From the sequence record AP019418.1: a stretch of DNA of 64,000 nt; one strand, 5' to 3'. Below are positions 15,511 to 58,182 of the stretch, piece after piece (the stretch's first letter is position 1; each line of letters starts with the position of its first letter). The notes beneath the pieces were generated by a model. The model did not search any database, was not told the origin of the DNA, and worked only from the letters and a program-made list of their open reading frames with translations. Both the position numbers and the translations under genes were made by a program.

Positions 15511-15595
15511 GCCCGAATGGTGAAATTGGTAAACACAGAAGACTTAAAATCTTCCGGCTACGGTCTTGTCGGTTCGAATCCGACTTCGGGCACCA
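15511..15595 (+). tRNA. tRNA-Leu(TAA)
   Basis: GCCCGAA/TTCGGGC acceptor stem; CT-TAA-AA loop; long variable arm; GTTCGAATC; encoded CCA. Confidence 0.97.
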
Positions 15596-15604
15596 ATTTA
15601 AATA

Positions 15605-15680
15605 CGGAGTGTAGCGCAGTTGGTAGCGCGCCTGCTTTGGGAGCAGGATGTCGGGAGTTCGAGTCTCCCCACTCCGACCA
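15605..15680 (+). tRNA. tRNA-Pro(TGG)
   Basis: CGGAGTG/CACTCCG; CCTGC-TT-TGG-GA-GCAGG; CCA. Confidence 0.97.
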
Positions 15681-15701
15681 TTTTAATAATAGGTAAATAG
15701 G

Positions 15702-15995
15702 ATGGATAATAAATGGATATCATGGGAACATCAAATTATAGGAACAGCTCTTTACGCTATTCTTAGTGACCCTGAATTAACTAATATTCAATTAGCTCAA
15801 GGCTTACACTATCTAACAGAAGCAAAGTCTTCTGTATTACATGTTTGTAATAATCATATTACATTCACTGTAACCTATCCACATGGCACATTTAGAACCA
15901 ATGTAATTAGAGAGTGCCCTGCTAGTGATACAAATACATTCAAATGGTCAGGTGTATTAGTCCGTCAAAAAGATGGAACATTCTTACCAGAATAA
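15702..15995 (+). CDS. hypothetical protein (97 aa)
   Basis: ORF track; lies between tRNAs. Confidence 0.7.
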   Translation: MDNKWISWEHQIIGTALYAILSDPELTNIQLAQGLHYLTEAKSSVLHVCNNHITFTVTYPHGTFRTNVIRECPASDTNTFKWSGVLVRQKDGTFLPE

Positions 15996-16002
15996 ATAAA
16001 AA

Positions 16003-16079
16003 GGGCCTATAGCTCAGTTGGTTAGAGCAGGCGACTCATAATCGCTTGGTCGCAGGTTCAAGTCCTGCTGGGCCCACCA
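16003..16079 (+). tRNA. tRNA with CAT anticodon, most likely tRNA-Ile2 (lysidine, reads AUA)
   Basis: body GCAGGCGACTCATAATCGCTTGGTCGC closely resembles enterobacterial ileX; G1-C72 paired and no run of three G-C pairs in the anticodon stem, so not an initiator. Confidence 0.85.
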
Positions 16080-16131
16080 TATACTAGCCTCCCACTTGGG
16101 GGAGGTTTTATACTGTCTCATTGAGGAAAAC

Positions 16132-16353
16132 ATGAATACAGTAATAATGTTGGTATTATCTATCAAAGTTGGATTATTTGGTTTCATTTCGACTAATGAA
16201 AGTAATATCCTATTTGAAAATAGGGAACAGTGTATTTCTCATCTGGATATTCTGGAACATAAATACAAGTCTCTTGAAGTTATTCGAAATGAGAATACTC
16301 TAAAGATAACCGAAAGAGATAACCATTCTATTTATATTTTTAAATGTCTCTAG
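16132..16353 (+). CDS. small protein with hydrophobic N-terminus (73 aa)
   Basis: GAGG RBS before ATG 16132; longer ORF start lies in a terminator. Confidence 0.65.
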   Translation: MNTVIMLVLSIKVGLFGFISTNESNILFENREQCISHLDILEHKYKSLEVIRNENTLKITERDNHSIYIFKCL

Positions 16354-16361
16354 GAAAATAC

Positions 16362-16649
16362 ATGGAACATCAAGAACAAAAAGAACTATTGAGACAACCA
16401 TTACAAACACTTTATAATCTTACTTTTAGTCCCCGTTTACGTAATGGAGCGAAGGCTCCCGATTGGATTCACCTGACCGATGAAGTAACCCTATTCCCAA
16501 ACGGATTAGATATTACAATCAACGCTGTTACACGTTGCATCAAATGGGAACTTATCGGCGAGGATGTAAGTAACATTACTTATGTTGAAGCTATGTTCTT
16601 TAATAAAGGTCTTAAAGCAGTTAAAGCCTATCTCAAACATACGGAGTAA
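16362..16649 (+). CDS. hypothetical protein (95 aa)
   Basis: AGGA RBS before MEHQ. Confidence 0.7.
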   Translation: MEHQEQKELLRQPLQTLYNLTFSPRLRNGAKAPDWIHLTDEVTLFPNGLDITINAVTRCIKWELIGEDVSNITYVEAMFFNKGLKAVKAYLKHTE

Positions 16650-16651
16650 AT

Positions 16652-16999
16652 ATGGATCATCTAACCCCAACGCAGAGCGCTGTATATTTCACATTTATTA
16701 GCCCTGAGTTTATAAAGCTAACTCTTGTTGAATCTTTTGTAGCGATCCACAAGAAACATCCAGAAGTAAAGCATTGCGTTAAGAAAAAGATTAGTGCTAA
16801 TGAAACGCAGTTTATCTTTATCTTCAAAGATGGGACTGATAATTTAATCATTACACGTAAAACTGAACCTTGCCCTGAACTGGATAGCCCAGTAGGCGAT
16901 AGTATTAAGTTGTCCGGCGAAGAACTTAAAAATATTCTTGCTAAGTACGATCGTCCCAAGGATGGTAACTATTTCAAGCACTGGACTGATCGCCCGTAA
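16652..16999 (+). CDS. hypothetical protein (115 aa)
   Basis: GGAG RBS; ORF track. Confidence 0.75.
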   Translation: MDHLTPTQSAVYFTFISPEFIKLTLVESFVAIHKKHPEVKHCVKKKISANETQFIFIFKDGTDNLIITRKTEPCPELDSPVGDSIKLSGEELKNILAKYDRPKDGNYFKHWTDRP

Positions 17000-17051
17000 T
17001 AAAATATTACTGGTTATGTAATACTATGTAGGAAGTCATGTCCATACGTTT

Positions 17052-17128
17052 GCGCTCATAGTTCAGTTGGTTAGAATACCCGCCTGTCACGCGGGTGGTC
17101 AGGGGTTCGAGTCCCCTTGGGCGCGCCA
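17052..17128 (+). tRNA. tRNA-Asp(GTC)
   Basis: GCGCTCA/TGGGCGC; CCCGC-CT-GTC-AC-GCGGG; CCA. Confidence 0.97.
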
Positions 17129-17134
17129 TTTAAT

Positions 17135-17210
<76 letters not shown>

Positions 17211-17216
17211 TATTCT

Positions 17217-17241
17217 AAAGAGTAGCTTCGGCTACTCTTTT
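17217..17241 (+). terminator. intrinsic terminator
   Basis: AAAGAGTAGC-TTCG-GCTACTCTTTT. Confidence 0.85.
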
Positions 17242-17294
17242 ATGTTGCCATGGGTTATCTTATGAATTAAAATGATTTACTTGAGAGCACACTC

Positions 17295-18302
17295 ATGTTT
17301 GAATTACTATTATCGCCAGATATAGGCGAAGAGTTACCCTTGGTTGGATTTAATGAAATTATTAAATTAGGTGATCTACCTGTAGCGTTAGCTGGTACAA
17401 TGTCATATGTGGATGGAAATACACTGTATGTTGGATCTGGTCATCATACTGAAGGACAAACAGCTGCAACTGTGTTCAGACGTTTTACCATATCGCCATT
17501 TGCCGATATAGGTGCAACTGCTTCTGGAACATTCTTACCAGGGGTATCTTTAGGATTTGGGACATTACATAAGAATAACTTTATTGTTTATGGCGGTATT
17601 ACTGGATGGAACTCGGCTGGTAATGGTGGTACGGGAACATCTAACTTTATACAACATTTTGATATAGCTACAGGCAATAGGGTTGAGCGATATAGTGGTC
17701 CCGTACCACTTTGGGGCACAGCCTCCGCATCAGATGGTAATGATCTTATTATGTGTGTTAACCCAGTTGGGGTAAATGCAATGCGGTTAAAACCATCGGG
17801 TAAGACATGGCTTAGTGGGCAAGATTATTCAGGTGGTGCTCGTTCAGGTCAACAGTTATTCTTTTATAATGGTTACTTTTACCATTTTGGTGGTTGGGAT
17901 AATACAAAGAACATACCTAATCTTGAAGTTTATCGATATAATGCAACTACCTTAATATGGGAGCAAACACCTTGGATGATTATACCTGCTGATAAAGGAA
18001 CAATCTGGCAAGGTAATGGTTATGTAGATGGGGACTATTTTAATTACCTTAACGCTGTTGATGTCGGCGGTGTAACTAAAATGTTTGCACAACGTTTTAA
18101 TATTAGGCGCCGGAAATGGGCTGAACCATTTGAACTAGGTATCGGATTCCTTAATATTTCATCTATAGCTAAAGGTCCGGATAATAGCATGATCATTGTA
18201 GGTGGATCTAAAATGCCAGTTGGTGGTGGAGCATATATGTTGAAAAGCCAATTGTTATCAGGTATCTATCAGGTAAAACTAGCGCCATTAATCATTGATT
18301 AA
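17295..18302 (+). CDS. kelch-like beta-propeller protein, possibly virion-associated
   Basis: 335 aa; repeated VYGG, FGGWDN, IVGG with downstream aromatic/W at kelch-like spacing. Confidence 0.65.
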   Translation: MFELLLSPDIGEELPLVGFNEIIKLGDLPVALAGTMSYVDGNTLYVGSGHHTEGQTAATVFRRFTISPFADIGATASGTFLPGVSLGFGTLHKNNFIVYGGITGWNSAGNGGTGTSNFIQHFDIATGNRVERYSGPVPLWGTASASDGNDLIMCVNPVGVNAMRLKPSGKTWLSGQDYSGGARSGQQLFFYNGYFYHFGGWDNTKNIPNLEVYRYNATTLIWEQTPWMIIPADKGTIWQGNGYVDGDYFNYLNAVDVGGVTKMFAQRFNIRRRKWAEPFELGIGFLNISSIAKGPDNSMIIVGGSKMPVGGGAYMLKSQLLSGIYQVKLAPLIID

Positions 18303-18354
18303 AATAATAATATTTATAACTATTTAGATAATTATACTGGCACGATGATATTAT

Positions 18355-18466
18355 GTAAGAGTACTATAATAAAGTATTCTTAAATCTATCCACTAAACAC
18401 ACTCGGTGGTAGAACTTATTATAGAGTGTGTCTAAATGCCAGGGGTTTGCCACCCCTGGTTATATT
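18355..18466 (+). ncRNA. candidate structured sRNA (two hairpins, possible pseudoknot, terminator)
   Basis: starts at TATG; stems 18356-65/18373-82, 18394-404/18424-34, 18439-46/18452-59 plus T-rich tail; no ORF. Confidence 0.6.
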
Positions 18467-18586
18467 CATTGTTACTATTATAAATTCATTTATAGATGAG
18501 AAAAGGTTTTATCACCTTTTCAAAATCGGCATTTAATTCCAGTTAAAAAACTGAATCTATGCTACATTGTAATAAAGGAGTCTATT

Positions 18587-19099
18587 ATGACTAACTCTAA
18601 TCAGTTTGTAAGAACTATTGTAAAGTACCAAGATATCCTAGATGCTTTAATTCAAAAAACGAATGAGAACTGGGTTAATTATCGATCTAATTCTATTGGT
18701 CATATTGTTATTCGTGAATACAGGACTGTTGGATTATTTGTAGGTCGGCAATGTGGTAGTACAACTGCATTGATTGAGTTTGCTAATCGTCATCCTGGCG
18801 AATGTCTAGCTGTATTTGTAGAAGATAAAATTAAACAGGCTGTACTGGCTAAGTTCCAGAATGCTAAAGATAATATTGTTTCTTGTTTAATTACACACCA
18901 ACTCCGTAAATATATTCATCAACCTGAGGAATCATCTATTCAAAAAGATATTAAAGAAGAATTAATATCGTCTGTAAAATATATTCTTGTTGACAATGCC
19001 TCATTTAATCTGAACCTACGCGGTATCACTGATAAAGAATTTAACCAGTGGGTTGCAGATACTTTTGGTACAGAGGTAATGGTGGTTCGTTTTAGTTAG
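18587..19099 (+). CDS. hypothetical protein with degenerate P-loop-like motif
   Basis: 170 aa; VGRQCGSTT after a beta strand; YILVDNA resembles Walker B. Confidence 0.55.
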   Translation: MTNSNQFVRTIVKYQDILDALIQKTNENWVNYRSNSIGHIVIREYRTVGLFVGRQCGSTTALIEFANRHPGECLAVFVEDKIKQAVLAKFQNAKDNIVSCLITHQLRKYIHQPEESSIQKDIKEELISSVKYILVDNASFNLNLRGITDKEFNQWVADTFGTEVMVVRFS

Positions 19100-19259
19100 A
19101 ATTAGTAACTTTGATAGTTTCTAATAAGATTAACTACACGTTATTTACATAATGTCATAACAAGAAATAAATAATACTCAGATTGTAATAATATGTAGTT
19201 ATTACATATCTATATTAGGTTGTCAGTAACTCATCTCTAATATAAAATCGCCATTTAAT

Positions 19260-19335
<76 letters not shown>

Positions 19336-19466
19336 ATTCATAGTTTTAGATTTAGTTATATTTCACTACTATGTAAACTATAAAGGCAGCTAATGCTGCC
19401 TTTATGTCGTCTTGTAAAAGTACCCAATAGTTGAATCTTATAGCTGAATACAAATAGGGTAAAGAC

Positions 19467-19652
19467 ATGTCACTTAAAGCATTGCAAGATATAGTTAGTA
19501 GTGTTCCTACAAATGAACAAAAGGAACGATTAGTTAAAGTTCGGAAAACGATGGAAGAGCTAAATGAGTCTATTAAGAATCAGATTCGTAATAAACGACC
19601 TAGTCAAGCTCTTCTCGACAAAACGATAAACTGGGGTACCAAGTATGGCTAA
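19467..19652 (+). CDS. hypothetical protein (61 aa)
   Basis: ORF track. Confidence 0.65.
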   Translation: MSLKALQDIVSSVPTNEQKERLVKVRKTMEELNESIKNQIRNKRPSQALLDKTINWGTKYG

Positions 19653-19935
19653 GACATTAGTTCGTGCAAAGCTGATTACTGAGGCTGGTCAATGGATGTC
19701 GTCTGACTGGGAATGTGGTTTCCGTGCATGTCGATTCGTGAAACTTGGTAATGATCATGTAAACATAAAAGACTTTGAGGCTATGATCACGGCATTCGAA
19801 GTTGGTGACATGTTAGTGATTTGGCCAAATGGGCTTAGAACTTCGTATAGTGTGGATAATTTCAATAAGTACTTTTCCCATATCAAAGATGAATACCATG
19901 AGACTGATCTCCGTCCACTCTTTTACCCCAAGTAG
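19645..19935 (+). CDS. hypothetical protein (96 aa)
   Basis: ORF track; overlaps upstream stop. Confidence 0.7.
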   Translation: MAKTLVRAKLITEAGQWMSSDWECGFRACRFVKLGNDHVNIKDFEAMITAFEVGDMLVIWPNGLRTSYSVDNFNKYFSHIKDEYHETDLRPLFYPK

Positions 19936-20406
19936 TTGAGCTTATGATAACTATATTCGTGTATAAATACATTACATTCGTTATACCCTTTAATTGATTG
20001 AAATCAAGCTACATAAAAGTGATTGAATGGTCCATGTAGGTGATAATTTTAATAAAGGTAAAGGATTTATCAGAGAATATCTCAGTGCATTTAGGTATTT
20101 TATCACTCGCCTATCTAAATCACATAAAGCCCTTTACCGAGGAATGTGAGAATGTTGGTTGCGATTGATAATACTGGGACAGAATATGATGTCGACCCAA
20201 CTGATGAAGTAGACGTAATGTTTGTATTTAGACCCACACTAAAATAACTTTATATGACTTAATACCCCTCTATATAGAGTGGTCTATTTATAAGTAAAAT
20301 TATACATAGAGTTAATATTATTTGTAGATTAGTTCTACACATAACTCAACTTGAAACCGGGTGTTAATAAAATTTAACACTACGGAAAACATAAAGGTGT
20401 ATAAAA

Positions 20407-21036
20407 ATGGCTTTTCATTTTACTGAAGTAGATTTAAATGATTTTATCAATGAATCAGGTAAAGACTTAAAAATAAATGTTGGTAAACAAACACTAGCAG
20501 TTTATGATATCGATAGGCTAAATATTGTTAATTCAACTATTAATAAACTAGTTTATAATGAACCTATAAGTGAAGAACACATAGATGCATCACTTACAGA
20601 TAATTCATTAAAAGAGCTTAATGATTATTTACTAAATGTTGGTGTTACTGAAAGCGCTAAAATGATGATTGATGCTGTGTTAGAATTAAGCGATTATCAT
20701 AAAAGTGATGAATACTTTAACCCAATGATGTATAAATTAAAAAGTATGCACACTAAAAATACAGATGGTGTTTATTTGATATTTTTACCAACGCCTACTA
20801 TCGATGATCAAATTAACACCATGCAAGGGTATATTATCAATAAATCCGGTAATCTCATTAGGACTACTGTACAGTCATGGCGATTTGAGAAAATTGAATT
20901 CAAAGACTTAGCCAAACATGATAGACGTTGGTTATTTATTGAATATTACATTAATGTTAAACAAACGAAAAATAATATAATCAAAGAGCAACAAGATGAA
21001 TTAACTAAATTTATTTATTATAGTACTCTAAGTTAA
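20407..21036 (+). CDS. hypothetical protein (209 aa)
   Basis: AAGGTG RBS; ORF track. Confidence 0.75.
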   Translation: MAFHFTEVDLNDFINESGKDLKINVGKQTLAVYDIDRLNIVNSTINKLVYNEPISEEHIDASLTDNSLKELNDYLLNVGVTESAKMMIDAVLELSDYHKSDEYFNPMMYKLKSMHTKNTDGVYLIFLPTPTIDDQINTMQGYIINKSGNLIRTTVQSWRFEKIEFKDLAKHDRRWLFIEYYINVKQTKNNIIKEQQDELTKFIYYSTLS

Positions 21037-21059
21037 AACAAATAAAAAAATAAATATAA

Positions 21060-21084
21060 GAGCTAGCCCCTAATGGGCTAGCTT
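21060..21084. terminator. bidirectional terminator
   Basis: AAGCTAGCCC-CTAAT-GGGCTAGCTT flanked by A/T tracts, between convergent genes. Confidence 0.8.
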
Positions 21085-21093
21085 TATGTTATC

Positions 21094-21231
21094 TTACTCT
21101 GCTACATCTTTTACATCAGGTTTATTATTCCAACGTACTGCTCTCGCAATACCATACGTAAGAATAAGAGCACCTACGGTGCCAATAGTGGTGCTAATAA
21201 TAATGCCAAGAGTTTTTGGATCAATATTCAT
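21094..21231 (-). CDS. small membrane protein (45 aa), not in ORF track
   Basis: MNIDPKTLGIIISTTIGTVGALILTYGIAR...; AGGA RBS; early-type promoter at about 21288-21315. Confidence 0.7.
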   Translation of the reverse strand: MNIDPKTLGIIISTTIGTVGALILTYGIARAVRWNNKPDVKDVAE

Positions 21232-21378
21232 ATTTAGTATCCTATTTACAATTAATAGAAAATATTACTTTTAGTAATATCAAGTTAATGATATACTGTT
21301 TAAATATGTTTGAATATAACTTTATTTATTATAATAAATAAAATAATACTTTCATATACACTATATGTAGAAGATTCC

Positions 21379-21455
21379 GCCGCTATAGCTCAGCTAGGTA
21401 GAGCAACGCACTTGTAATGCGTAGGTCCTCCGTTCGATTCGGAGTGGCGGCACCA
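21379..21455 (+). tRNA. tRNA-Thr(TGT)
   Basis: GCCGCTA/TGGCGGC; ACGCA-CT-TGT-AA-TGCGT; CCA; TATG motif at 21364-21367. Confidence 0.97.
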
Positions 21456-54344: not shown

Positions 54345-55178
54345 CTAATATTTTCTTCGTTCGATATCCTGTAGTTTCGCGAATGTGTCGAGCTTGTATT
54401 GGTCAACAAAATGCCAGGCTAGATCGGTAAGTGTATAGATGTCCGGACGTTCGTATTTACCGAAGTCTGGTTTCTCACGACTCAATTGAAAATCGATGAA
54501 CTGATCTAATATAGGGCAACGATCTATCAGATCCTGTTCAATAGACCCAACCTTATCATTAACCAGTTCTTGGATACGTTTATAAATGATAGGATCTGAC
54601 AGAAGAGGCAGTAGGTCATGGAATACCATCGGCGGATGTTCCAGACTTTCACGGACCCACATTGCAGCCAACAGAGGACGAAGAGAATAGAAGTATTTCT
54701 TCATCCGGATCTTCTCATCTGACAACCAACGCATTTTGGTTTGTTTGGCCATCGAGATATAGTGCATGTAACTCGATTCAGGGATGAAGTGTTTTAGCGC
54801 AGCATCGCGGATTAACATGTAGTCCCGATCAACCTTACGGTAAACGATTGGGGAGTTTAGCCATTCCAAGAGAGTGGGGTTAGACTTGTAAGCAAGCTGA
54901 AGAGTCTTAGTGATACTCCAACCAGCTAGGTCTAGTTCTTTAGACACCATCTCTTCAATAGTATCACGTGCTTCATTATCCACACGAACATAATGACTCG
55001 GATGGTTAACGTAAATGAAACGAACGTCATAGTCACTATTGGTTGAAGCAAAGCCCCATCCACGACTACCGGACTCACAAGCATAAATAATCTTTACACC
55101 ATATTTCTTTTCGATACGGTCTAGTTCTACATTAATCGTTACCCGCATCTCATCGTTAACTGGATGACGTTGATCCAT
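54345..55178 (-). CDS. Pol-beta superfamily nucleotidyltransferase (RlaP/YcgL-like)
   Basis: ACESGSRGWGFASTNSDYDVRFIY; DLAGW; KSNPTLLEWLNSPIVY; KKYFY.LRP.LA. Confidence 0.9.
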   Translation of the reverse strand: MDQRHPVNDEMRVTINVELDRIEKKYGVKIIYACESGSRGWGFASTNSDYDVRFIYVNHPSHYVRVDNEARDTIEEMVSKELDLAGWSITKTLQLAYKSNPTLLEWLNSPIVYRKVDRDYMLIRDAALKHFIPESSYMHYISMAKQTKMRWLSDEKIRMKKYFYSLRPLLAAMWVRESLEHPPMVFHDLLPLLSDPIIYKRIQELVNDKVGSIEQDLIDRCPILDQFIDFQLSREKPDFGKYERPDIYTLTDLAWHFVDQYKLDTFAKLQDIERRKY

Positions 55179-55585
55179 TATCCACCAACCTTTTCAAATT
55201 TGAGTTTTTCTTCTTTACCTGTGTCCAGATACATGAACATCGATGTACCCAGCAAGTTGTATACAAACCAACCTTTGCTCACAAGTTCCTCTTCGAATTT
55301 CAGTGGTGCCGATAGTTCGCATATAGCCTCGTACGGGATGACAATAGGCTCTTTCTCGGGCTTAGTAAGAATCAGTGCATGATCTGCAAGCTTCAACCAT
55401 TGTTTGCGACTACTGATACCAAGACCAATACTAAACTCTTCACCTGGATCTTTTCCGTTAAAAAGGCTACAGCGAGTTTCTTTGGTTACTCTATTACCGG
55501 CGATACCGATCGTGAGAGGATCAGGAAAGACCCCCATCAGTTCAATAACCATTTCAAGTTGACGCTTCAGTTCAGTGTTGTTCAT
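55178..55585 (-). CDS. hypothetical protein (135 aa)
   Basis: TAATG coupling to nucleotidyltransferase. Confidence 0.75.
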   Translation of the reverse strand: MNNTELKRQLEMVIELMGVFPDPLTIGIAGNRVTKETRCSLFNGKDPGEEFSIGLGISSRKQWLKLADHALILTKPEKEPIVIPYEAICELSAPLKFEEELVSKGWFVYNLLGTSMFMYLDTGKEEKLKFEKVGG

Positions 55586-55718
55586 AGGACAAATTCCTTT
55601 GTATTGTATTTACGTACTACATCGGTCCACTAGGTAGGAGTCTGTGCATAGTAGTATTCGTTGAATATCCCAAATGAACCATAGGGAAATAAAGCCTCCC
55701 CAAAGGGAGGCATTTATG

Positions 55719-56021
55719 TTAGACAGCAACTTTACCAGCAATGTGTGGATGATATTCGTAGTTCTCGATAACAAAATCATCTACACCAATTTCCCGAATA
55801 TCTTTACCAATAGCTTCTTGTTTGAAACAAATAGTTGGTAGAACTTTCGGTTCACGAGTTAATTGAAGATCAGTTTGTTCTTGGTGGTTAGAGTAAATAT
55901 GTACATCGCCGCCAGTCCAGATAAACTCTTCAGCAATCATATTCATTTGGTTAGCCAGCATATGAGTAAGCAGACTATAGAACGTGATGTTAAAGGGTTT
56001 TCCTAAGAAAGTATCGACGCT
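55719..56021 (-). CDS. thyA: thymidylate synthase, exon 2
   Basis: SVDTFLGKPFNI..YSLL...GDVHIYSNH...P..KVAV; continues YQR of exon 1. Confidence 0.93.
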   Translation of the reverse strand, partial: SVDTFLGKPFNITFYSLLTHMLANQMNMIAEEFIWTGGDVHIYSNHQEQTDLQLTREPKVLPTICFKQEAIGKDIREIGVDDFVIENYEYHPHIAGKVAV

Positions 56022-57111
56022 CTCTTATGTTCACCCAGGGTCGTTAATCCTGAGCCGTTTACTTAAATGACTTTATAACCAGAATACTTTGGATTCTTGC
56101 TGTTAATTCGGTATGTTATTGTACCCTGTGATACTCCGAGAGCCTTAGCTGCATCGGCCTGGGATAAATAAACAACACCGTCCACTTCAAGTTTGTTTGA
56201 GTTAGTTGGCTTTATACTGCGTTTGTTATCCGCCAACTTTTTTCTGGTTTCTTCGGAATGTGTTTTACCGTAGAATGGATTACGTTCGCCTGTTCTCTGA
56301 GAAGCTATCTCCGACATCCTGGCTCTTGTCTCATCACTAGCTTTAATGCCAAGACGGTAAGTGTTACCCGTGTGTAACTCGGATAGAGCTACCTTAACTT
56401 CTTCTGTGTGAGTACGACCATACATCCCATTCTGCTCACCTGGTCGACCATACTTTTCCTGACGAGCCTCGGCTCCAATCTCATCAAGTCTGATACGTAT
56501 TGTATCACTCCGCTTCTCGATGATTTGTTCTTTGAGGTTATGCCTGGTTAAGTTATCACCACCCTTGGAGTGTCTACCAATATTAAGAAGGTTACCTTCT
56601 TCTTCATGCTTGGTTATCCACATCTGTTCGAGTGTAAATGCTGATTCCCGACTTTCACAACGATAGTACTTTAACGAGAATCTTTCACCGTTATCGTATT
56701 CTTGTTGTAATGGGTAGTTATGGTGCTTGGAATTACTAAGGTCTCTGAAATGTCGTTGAACGCGCTTAACTAAATCTCGCGCACTTCCGACATATACCTT
56801 TCCTTCTTTGGTGAATAGGCAATACACATAAGCTACGTCATTAATAACACCCTCCTTATCTGGCGGAGTCATTAAGTAAACCGCTGCATGTCTCCATGCA
56901 GGACAGACTATATCACGATCTCTTAAAAAGAGACCCCTACCTTTTCGGACCACTTGGTCCTACTCTACTCCCTTCCTCTTCTCAGAGTGGTTTCGATAGT
57001 CGTTAGGCATTTATGACCGTAGTCAATTTAGCACGGGATTGTCTCATAGAGAGTTTCCCCGTTTAGATAGGTTATTCGACTAGGATTGCTCCTAGAAGGC
57101 GCTAGTATTTA
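56022..57111 (-). mobile_element. group I intron in thyA
   Basis: 5' splice site after U with P1 GCGU/UA paired to UAGCGC; GACUA...AUAUAGUC P7; AAACGGGGAAAC and GACAAUCCCGUG core motifs; terminal G; splicing restores YQR-SxD. Confidence 0.93.
56063..56872 (-). CDS. intron-encoded GIY-YIG homing endonuclease (I-TevI/I-BmoI-like, NUMOD3 repeats)
   Basis: YVY...VYVGS...R...H; LEQ.WI; NLLN; two GxxNxxYGxTHxEE NUMOD3 repeats; C-terminal HTH; start placed at MTPPD. Confidence 0.9.
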   Translation of the reverse strand: MTPPDKEGVINDVAYVYCLFTKEGKVYVGSARDLVKRVQRHFRDLSNSKHHNYPLQQEYDNGERFSLKYYRCESRESAFTLEQMWITKHEEEGNLLNIGRHSKGGDNLTRHNLKEQIIEKRSDTIRIRLDEIGAEARQEKYGRPGEQNGMYGRTHTEEVKVALSELHTGNTYRLGIKASDETRARMSEIASQRTGERNPFYGKTHSEETRKKLADNKRSIKPTNSNKLEVDGVVYLSQADAAKALGVSQGTITYRINSKNPKYSGYKVI

Positions 57112-58182
57112 ACGCTGGTAGAGCTGGCAGCTCAATGCACGTTTAGGAACACCAAGTTTATCCCACAGTGCGTGATCAGTTTCCGGTTGCGCACCTTCAA
57201 GGAAAATACGTTGAGCTTCAGTGTCGTTAAGTTTGACCCAGTCATACCGTTCTTCTAGCGTCAGTTCACGAGTCCAGAACTGAAAGAAGCTATGACATGG
57301 TGGGAGCGCCTGTTCATCAACGAGTTGCGGTGACCACGCACAAACGATGATTCGACGGGAATCAGGGTTTGTCTTAAGTTGATCAATCACGTCTTGAATT
57401 TGATCAATACGACGTGTTACAACACAGCGGTCATTCTCCATACACGTACCAGGAATATCAACTACGAAGTTAAAGCCACGCTTCTCATAATCCACCCACT
57501 CATATTTAGGGATTACACGAGTGTCTTCAAGATCACGCCAAGTCTTACCGTAAACGGCACCTAGATCGCCCCCGATGAGTTTCAGAGGCTTAACTCCAAA
57601 TAGCAATTTATATAGTCGTTTACCATATTCATATTTAATTAGTTCTGGTGTTACACTCTCATCGAAATCTATAGTAGATACTGCCAGCCATTGGCTAGTG
57701 TTAACACCAATTACATGCGTAGCATCAATATTAATGGTTGGATATTGATTCCAAAAGCTAGCTATCTCATCATCACTTAAAGAAGCTTCAAACTCATCTC
57801 TAGTTTGAATGATTACTTCATCATCTAAACAATGAAAATAAAGGGCAAATGGGCCACCAACTTTCTTTAGAATAGCTGAGTCAAGCTCTTCTTGATTTAA
57901 CTCACGATACATCGCGGTATTTGGTTTAACCCATTCATTCCAAATGCGTACGCCATTTTCAATTAAATAATCTACACGAGTATCACCAGAAAGCATCCAG
58001 AACAATTCATGGATAACAGATGGAAGATGAATTTTCTTAGTAGTTACTACGGGTAGAACGTTGTTACGTAAACTATAACGTTCTTGTTGACCAAACATGC
58101 TCTGAGTACCAGTACCAGTACGGTCACCTTTATGCACACCGTGTTCTTTAACTAAACGAATTGAATTAAGATATTGTTCCAT
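57112..58182 (-). CDS. thyA: thymidylate synthase, exon 1, with large insertions
   Basis: DRTGTG; TTKK; ELFWMLSG; IWNEW; GDLGAVYG; SRRII; ALPPCH; LYQR followed by TAA inside the intron. Confidence 0.95.

Follow-up and report, generated by a model that had tools for sequence, protein, structure and literature searches.

What is the element that splits the thymidylate synthase gene (thyA) of a phiKZ-like phage, and is it still moving among that phage's relatives? We addressed this question in a stretch of 64,000 nucleotides (nt) from sequence record AP019418.1, henceforth the window, which belongs to a phiKZ-like phage (genus Phikzvirus) and whose thyA region is 100% identical to that of Pseudomonas phages PA02 and vB_Pae10145-KEN51. 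GenBank annotation of the intron-bearing locus merely lists a split thymidylate synthase and a homing endonuclease, and we found no paper describing a thyA intron in phiKZ-like phages. We conclude that the element is, with good probability, a mobile group I intron whose endonuclease resembles I-BmoI, and which copies itself into intronless thyA alleles together with flanking exon sequence of the donor. Throughout, intron-proximal positions are numbered from the insertion point, with negative values on the exon 1 side and positive values on the exon 2 side; the coordinates of all features are collected in Table 1.

The boundaries of the element were set by comparison with intronless alleles. 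The two thyA exons were analysed separately and colinearity was judged for each, and the uninterrupted thyA genes of phiKZ (PHIKZ235), PA7, Churi and BRkr proved colinear through the junction, which in the first three reads ..LYQR|SCDTFLG... Exon 1 matches Pfam PF00303 over profile positions 1-156 (2.4e-52) and exon 2 over positions 169-266 (6.6e-32), such that the profile coordinates of the second continue from those of the first. An in-frame TAA directly follows the CAG CGT that ends exon 1. A preliminary description, made by a model from the DNA letters and their reading frames, had placed an intron after YQR at 56022-57111; these coordinates are exact, with intronless alleles and Pfam in agreement.

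By its anatomy and by the conservation of its ribozyme, the element is a group I intron. The Rfam model RF00028 (Intron_gpI) matches with 69.4 bits (gathering score 50, E=8.5e-17) and, since this match spans the full model at 57121..56884, the whole core lies 5' of the endonuclease open reading frame (ORF). When the 5' parts of seven homologous introns (those of the window, SL2 and five uncultured-phage contigs) were folded together with RNAalifold, helices P1, P2, P3, P4/P5, P6, P7.1/P7.2, P8 and P9 were recovered, with compensatory changes in 17 of 60 pairs. The U.G pair of P1 at the 5' splice site is present in all seven homologues, and a terminal G closes the window intron as well as the introns of all the relatives. 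The exon strand of P1 is GCGU, that is, the last bases of exon 1, which pair with the internal guide. Two extra hairpins (P7.1/P7.2) between P7 and P3' are the mark of subgroup IA, and the similarity of the core to the T4 nrdD and td introns (about 70% in a DNA match against a phage collection) suggests subgroup IA2. Beyond the core, P9.1 is an 11-bp stem with 10 of 11 positions paired and one compensatory C-G to U-A change in locus L098. An RNA of this architecture would be expected to splice itself.

The ORF carried in the P9.1 loop encodes a homing endonuclease of the I-TevI family. Its Pfam matches (GIY-YIG, two copies of NUMOD3, and I-TevI_DNA-bd) all lie above the cut-offs: the GIY-YIG domain is N-terminal (PF01541, 36.9 bits against a cut-off of 22.6), and the C-terminal DNA-binding region is covered by PF07460, twice, and by PF20987. 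Both solved domains of I-TevI are matched in PDB (1i3j at 1.4e-12; 1mk0/1ln0), and alignment with I-TevI shows its catalytic residues (Tyr, Arg, His, His, Glu and Asn) to be conserved. The Cys-rich segment that forms the I-TevI zinc finger has no counterpart in the window enzyme, where a NUMOD3 repeat is aligned instead. The reading frame is intact in 12 out of 12 intron copies, and the ratio of nonsynonymous to synonymous substitution rates (dN/dS) is low (0.13 between the window and SL2 copies; 0.12-0.25 against relatives at 56-69% identity), indicating that the endonuclease is under purifying selection.

Recent movement of the intron can be read from its distribution. A survey of its presence and absence, as the preliminary description had proposed, separates 12 Phikzvirus records that carry it at 97.8-100% identity (PA02, KEN51, T2P, U1B, U5, NK1, phi9_PA9, Wadjak 1, OMKO1, fMGyn-Pae01 and SL2, the last of these twice) from 35 records that match straight across the site (including phiKZ, KTN4 and PA7). 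The intron copies differ at 0-4 of 1090 nt (SL2 at 23), where the exons around them have diverged by 5-30%. Specifically, compared with the window, T2P differs at 1 intron position out of 1090, with 93.4% identity over nt 1-900 of exon 1 and 94.4% over exon 2; OMKO1 differs at 3 (74.8% and 94.1%, respectively); and Wadjak 1 differs at 1 (69.8% and 95.4%). Fisher tests of intron against exons in these three phages gave p values from 5e-9 to 1e-96. Moreover, every type of exon 1 seen with the intron has its twin among intronless alleles: that of the window is 97.0% identical to Churi, and that of Wadjak 1 is 99.9% identical to phiKZ. Near-identical introns combined with intronless twins of the exon 1 types imply that the intron recently entered at least three thyA backgrounds. 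The case that this occurred by homing into intronless Phikzvirus alleles, although built indirectly from sequence comparison, is strong, and the thyA of Wadjak 1 has the look of a phiKZ-type allele newly invaded by the intron. Rfam, the Pfam domains and these population data thus agree with the earlier view of a mobile group I intron with a GIY-YIG endonuclease of the I-TevI family.

The exon sequence next to the intron tells a similar story. In every intron-bearing copy, donor markers are clustered between -38 and +6, where they include multi-base codon swaps on either side of the junction (CGT in place of AGA as the Arg codon, AGC in place of TCT as the Ser codon). As GCGU pairs with the guide, an intron copied without it could not form P1. 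The donor-type tract of 136 nt at the end of the window's exon 1 found no match in intronless Phikzvirus alleles, but it is 100% identical in T2P, the rest of whose exon 1 is 93.7% identical. In most copies this tract takes the place of a 229-nt segment that codes for a lineage-specific insert of ThyA. The short-loop version that it encodes instead is closest to the intronless thyA of BRkr, a Pseudomonas aeruginosa jumbo phage (76% at the amino-acid level and 69-74% at the DNA level, against 50% for exon 1 as a whole), and an intron-bearing uncultured phage (L099) has the same kind of short loop. Taken together, these two similarities make it probable that another lineage of jumbo phages was the source from which the intron came into the genus. 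In Wadjak 1, the upstream donor-type sequence comprises only -38..-1: it ends between -38 and -44, and beyond that point the exon is of phiKZ type.

These observations fit the following mechanism. After transcription the intron would splice itself out, with the guide pairing to GCGU and the U.G pair at the splice site, and the joining of CAG CGT to AGC GTC would restore the active-site segment YQR-SVD. The enzyme, most likely I-BmoI-like, would bind the conserved part of exon 2 in intronless thyA from about +7 onwards (codons D-T-F-L-G-K-P-F-N) and, in the CNNNG motif spanning the Gln-Arg codons (CAAAG, with G at -2), cleave both strands with a stagger, a few bases upstream of where the intron inserts. 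If the broken allele were then repaired on an intron-bearing genome, the intron and the donor exon sequence beside it would be copied in. Alleles that already hold the intron would be immune, as the 3' end of the intron sets an A at -2.

The proposed target differs in one respect from what had been described. The preliminary description had named CAGCG in the Gln-Arg codons as a cleavage-type motif which the insertion separates from downstream homing-site sequence. The motif is indeed present at -6..-2, is of the CNNNG type and is directly followed by the intron, which does part it from the downstream binding sequence. CAGCG is, however, the donor version, and we rejected it as the sequence met in targets: intronless alleles read CAAAG. 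This too is a CNNNG with G at -2, and no other occurs in the 34 nt that precede the site. The corresponding motifs are CAACG for I-TevI and GCCCG for I-BmoI (PMC5009752), and I-BmoI requires G at -2 (PMC3161791). Both enzymes bind a homologous stretch of exon 2 (PMC5009752, PMC3664794), and by analogy the window enzyme would bind exon 2 at +7..+53, a segment that is identical in intron-plus and intronless Phikzvirus alleles. None of the relatives' intron 3' ends has G at -2; sparing of the intron-bearing allele through a non-G base at this position would fit the published I-BmoI immunity rule.

The best-surviving alternative, to which we give only about a tenth part of our credence, is that the endonuclease is inactive or never acts in the phage nucleus, and that the intron spreads by ordinary homologous recombination during co-infection. 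Indeed, phiKZ-like genomes are highly mosaic around thyA, both in their exon 2 types and in the presence of the PHIKZ236 homologue, and phiKZ-type nuclei keep out many nucleases (PMC11087766). Recombination of this kind, however, would not account for an ORF that is kept intact with its catalytic residues and a low dN/dS, for an intron far more uniform than any of its flanks, or for the exon 1 crossover of Wadjak 1, which lies no more than 44 nt from the predicted break. We therefore favour homing by an active enzyme, which would have access to DNA in the phage nucleus.

Slightly less probable still is a mobile intron whose enzyme makes its cut away from the intron's insertion site instead of in the neighbouring Gln-Arg codons. 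I-TevI provides the precedent, as it cuts 23-25 nt upstream of the td site. The DNA-binding domain of the window enzyme is most similar to that of I-TevI (PDB 1i3j), and the donor tracts extend over 38 to at least 136 nt on the upstream side, as against six diagnostic bases on the downstream side. Yet there is no CNNNG between -34 and -7 in intronless alleles, the sole one being at -6..-2, and I-TevI and I-BmoI cut homologous Gln/Ala-Arg codons regardless of where the intron lies (PMC5009752).

Finally, 35 of the 47 records are without the intron and precise intron loss is known in principle, but an intron that was ancestral in the genus and precisely lost from most lineages is very improbable, for it should have diverged with its exons (whereas it differs at 0-4 of 1090 nt in exon 1 contexts of about 70-94% identity) and would leave unexplained both the foreign junction codons (CGT/AGC against AGA/TCT) and, in most intron-bearing alleles, the foreign short-loop segment closest to BRkr.

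Several points nevertheless weigh against homing by an I-BmoI-like enzyme as set out above. The sequence downstream of thyA in Wadjak 1 is also not phiKZ-like, so that a single ordinary crossover near the intron could explain the structure of this allele just as a short tract converted on both sides would. The predicted cut in the Gln-Arg codons is an argument by analogy throughout, and many CNNNG triplets are poor substrates for I-TevI (PMC5009752). A search for a P10 helix joining the guide region to exon 2 gave nothing convincing. In addition, the start of the endonuclease is ambiguous, and the ATG at 56872 is without a well-placed Shine-Dalgarno sequence.

The region around this start deserves description in its own right. 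In three uncultured relatives, the upstream ATG opens a frame of 12 codons that stops 5 nt before the GTG, which is the sole open start; in the window, a difference of 1 nt places the upstream ATG in frame with the endonuclease. Within 56825-56872 (-) of the window, shortly ahead of the first conserved residues of the enzyme, and likewise upstream of the endonuclease genes of L013, L016 and L099, a strong Shine-Dalgarno sequence (AAGGAGG) is followed, after 9 nt, by the mini-ORF ATG ACR TAG. The stop of this two-codon frame lies 5 nt upstream of the in-frame GTG, and the arrangement is kept in relatives that are 56-69% identical. Such a layout suggests that translation of the enzyme is coupled or restricted. 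The ATG and the GGAGG upstream of the endonuclease can be folded into a hairpin, but this was no more stable than shuffled sequence (z = -0.77), and we dropped a regulatory role for it on these grounds.

As for the wider family of the enzyme, a scan of IMG/VR with the endonuclease gave nothing closer than RisingSun, and closer relatives came only from Logan/ENA contigs. A match to SPbeta-like phages was set aside, as it lies outside any annotated thyA. Free-standing homologues at 35-41% identity were found at L011:1971-2765 (Acinetobacter phage Octan) and L012:1459-2262 (Acinetobacter phage 133), in both cases on the opposite strand and with an overlap at the 3' end of a td gene that is itself uninterrupted. 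Enzymes of this lineage therefore also target thymidylate synthase genes, or keep company with them, where no intron is present. Separately, parts of the intron find matches in about 100 Pseudomonas phage records, as against the 12 that carry it, and OMKO1 has a second matching place; there are therefore probably other group I introns, or related endonuclease genes, elsewhere in phiKZ-like genomes.

Table 1. Features of the interrupted thyA locus, with coordinates in the window.
Feature	Coordinates	Strand	Description and basis
thyA exon 1	57112..58182	-	357 codons, ending ..LSCQLYQR (CAG CGT); ORF list; Pfam PF00303
Donor-type exon 1 tract, last 136 nt	57112..57247	-	'short loop' version of the ThyA insert; co-converted with the intron
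CAGCG (CNNNG) at -6..-2	57113..57117	-	homologous to the I-TevI CAACG and I-BmoI GCCCG motifs
Group I intron, 1090 nt	56022..57111	-	starts TAA, ends ..AAGAG; Rfam RF00028; boundaries set by intronless alleles
Ribozyme core P1-P9, including P7.1/P7.2	56884..57121	-	covariance-model alignment, full model 1-253
P9.1, 5' strand	56873..56883	-	closes the ORF-containing loop; pairs with 56055-56065
Homing endonuclease ORF	56063..56872	-	269 amino acids from ATG 56872; alternative GTG 56827 gives 254 amino acids; Pfam
P9.1, 3' strand	56055..56065	-	starts with the ORF stop codon
P9.2 hairpin	56034..56054	-	6-bp stem, conserved loop; several compensatory stem changes among 7 homologues
Intron 3' tail	56022..56033	-	terminal G; A at -2 relative to exon 2; direct reading
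thyA exon 2	55719..56021	-	100 codons and stop; starts AGC GTC GAT (SVDTFLGKPFN..); Pfam PF00303
Donor-type exon 2 start, 6 bases	56016..56021	-	AGCGTC, against TCTTGT in intronless alleles
Exon 2 +7..+53	55969..56015	-	identical in intron-plus and intronless Phikzvirus alleles; putative endonuclease binding site
Terminator-like GC-rich hairpin with T run	55687..55711	-	3' of the thyA stop; sequence reading

ThyA carries large, lineage-specific inserts (window 57250-57700 (-), exon 1 codons ~90-310). Even within the single genus, exon 1 occurs as at least three types of allele with only 70-86% identity to one another, in contrast to 98-99% for the 3 kb upstream. On the other side of the gene, the terminator-like hairpin was picked up in the Rfam scan as a chance match to Phe_leader. 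Between thyA and an RlaP-type nucleotidyltransferase gene lies an ORF of 135 amino acids (55178-55585 (-)), a homologue of PHIKZ236 without a Pfam match, which is present in the window, PA02, phiKZ and PA7 and absent in Churi, T2P, OMKO1, SL2 and Wadjak 1. A second presence/absence polymorphism thus adjoins the intron. The nucleotidyltransferase itself (54345-55178 (-)) matches Pfam RlaP over its full length (5e-89; RNA repair pathway DNA polymerase beta family nucleotidyltransferase). Further away, the window contains seven transfer RNA genes above the Rfam gathering threshold (15511-21452 (+)).

A role of the endonuclease in competition between phages had been raised by analogy with the intron endonuclease of phiPA3 (gp210), and it is from this analogy that any such role would have to be argued. 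That enzyme is encoded in an intron of a Pseudomonas jumbo phage that forms a nucleus, and in the related phiKZ the corresponding allele has no intron (PMC11620839). It is an HNH nickase in an RNA polymerase gene, for which the competitive effect was shown, and thymidylate synthase appears in that work solely as something targeted in other phages (Birkholz et al. 2024, PMC11620839). The window enzyme differs in being a GIY-YIG protein in thyA, as opposed to an HNH protein in another gene. In a more far-reaching scenario, which we regard as speculative and rather unlikely, the enzyme would be imported into the phage nucleus and break the intronless thyA of competitors, making it weapon and parasite at once, and homing would repeatedly rewrite the surface insert of ThyA, exchanging a loop of about 76 residues for one of about 45 residues from another phage genus.

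The thyA intron leaves current concepts unchanged. It does, however, provide a second naturally occurring pair of intron and endonuclease among the Pseudomonas jumbo phages that form a nucleus, with natural partners at hand (phiKZ without the intron; OMKO1, PA02, KEN51, SL2 and Wadjak 1 with it), and is as such suited to asking whether a homing endonuclease made in the cytoplasm reaches DNA in the phage nucleus and affects competition in co-infection. Points of moderate interest are the clear signs in nature of recent homing among nucleus-forming jumbo phages, the import of foreign exon sequence, by which homing is seen to bring foreign coding sequence into an enzyme (ThyA), and the residence of the endonuclease gene in different loops of related introns. 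The set of I-TevI/I-BmoI enzymes also gains members from phages of Gram-negative hosts, with CAAAG as a target.

How, then, does this intron relate to those already known in the same gene? Insertion sites in the T4 td, LY2 and RisingSun genes were taken from translations. As the preliminary description had stated, the window site lies 21 nt upstream of that of T4 td, the first exon of which ends ..YQRSVDVFLG, seven codons further on (T4 record). The idea that this makes it a new insertion site was rejected, since it is the position of the I-BmoI intron and is used by other thyA introns as well. In the published numbering of the I-BmoI substrate, the critical G is at -2, and G+7, A+8 and C+9 are followed by ATG GCC TTG GGA AAT CCC (PMC3664794, PMC3161791). 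G+7/A+8/C+9 are the Asp codon of S-x-D-M-A-L-G-N-P-F-N, from which it follows that the I-BmoI intron lies directly after the conserved Arg codon, as the window intron does. The same site is occupied, by introns with homologous GIY-YIG enzymes, in the thyA genes of Erwinia jumbo phage RisingSun and Bacillus phage vB_BceH_LY2 and in Logan/ENA contigs L013-L017 and L098-L100, and in all of these ..GCGT stands directly before the intron. The thy intron of beta22 presumably belongs here too.

The closest parallel is the I-BmoI intron of Bacillus mojavensis thyA, compared here through published descriptions. The two share the insertion point after the conserved Arg codon, a GIY-YIG enzyme with a linker lacking a zinc finger (for I-BmoI, PMC5009752), NUMOD3 repeats and a helix-turn-helix, a cleavage-type motif with G at -2 just upstream, and a binding sequence in exon 2 (PMC3664794, PMC3161791, PMC5009752). 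They differ in setting, a Bacillus chromosome as opposed to a jumbo phage of a Gram-negative host, and in the first position of the motif, where the window-type target has the C that I-TevI requires, unlike the GCCCG of I-BmoI. T4 td with I-TevI likewise shares the gene, a homologous enzyme (32% identity over 88% of the length) and a core about 70% similar, but its intron lies 21 nt downstream, after ..FLG, its enzyme has a zinc finger, and the I-TevI ORF sits inside the core, whereas the core of the window intron is complete before the ORF begins. The best DNA match to the window core outside Pseudomonas is the T4 nrdD (sunY) intron, with 69.5% over positions 46-235, which interrupts another host gene and carries another endonuclease (I-TevII); its ORF also lies in the 3' P9 region.

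The thyA introns of RisingSun and LY2, annotated only as split genes, combine the site of the window intron with a homologous 5' intron part and core, and their enzymes are 39-40% identical to that of the window by alignment (41% for RisingSun by tblastn). Neither these two loci nor T4 td yielded an intron score in Rfam at either threshold, since ORFs split their cores. In RisingSun and LY2, about 134 nt of intron precede the ORF, which lies in the P6 region ahead of P7, while in the window and its uncultured relatives it occupies P9.1; the endonuclease gene has thus taken up different positions in homologous introns. The window intron is a further member of the I-BmoI/I-TevI class of thyA introns.

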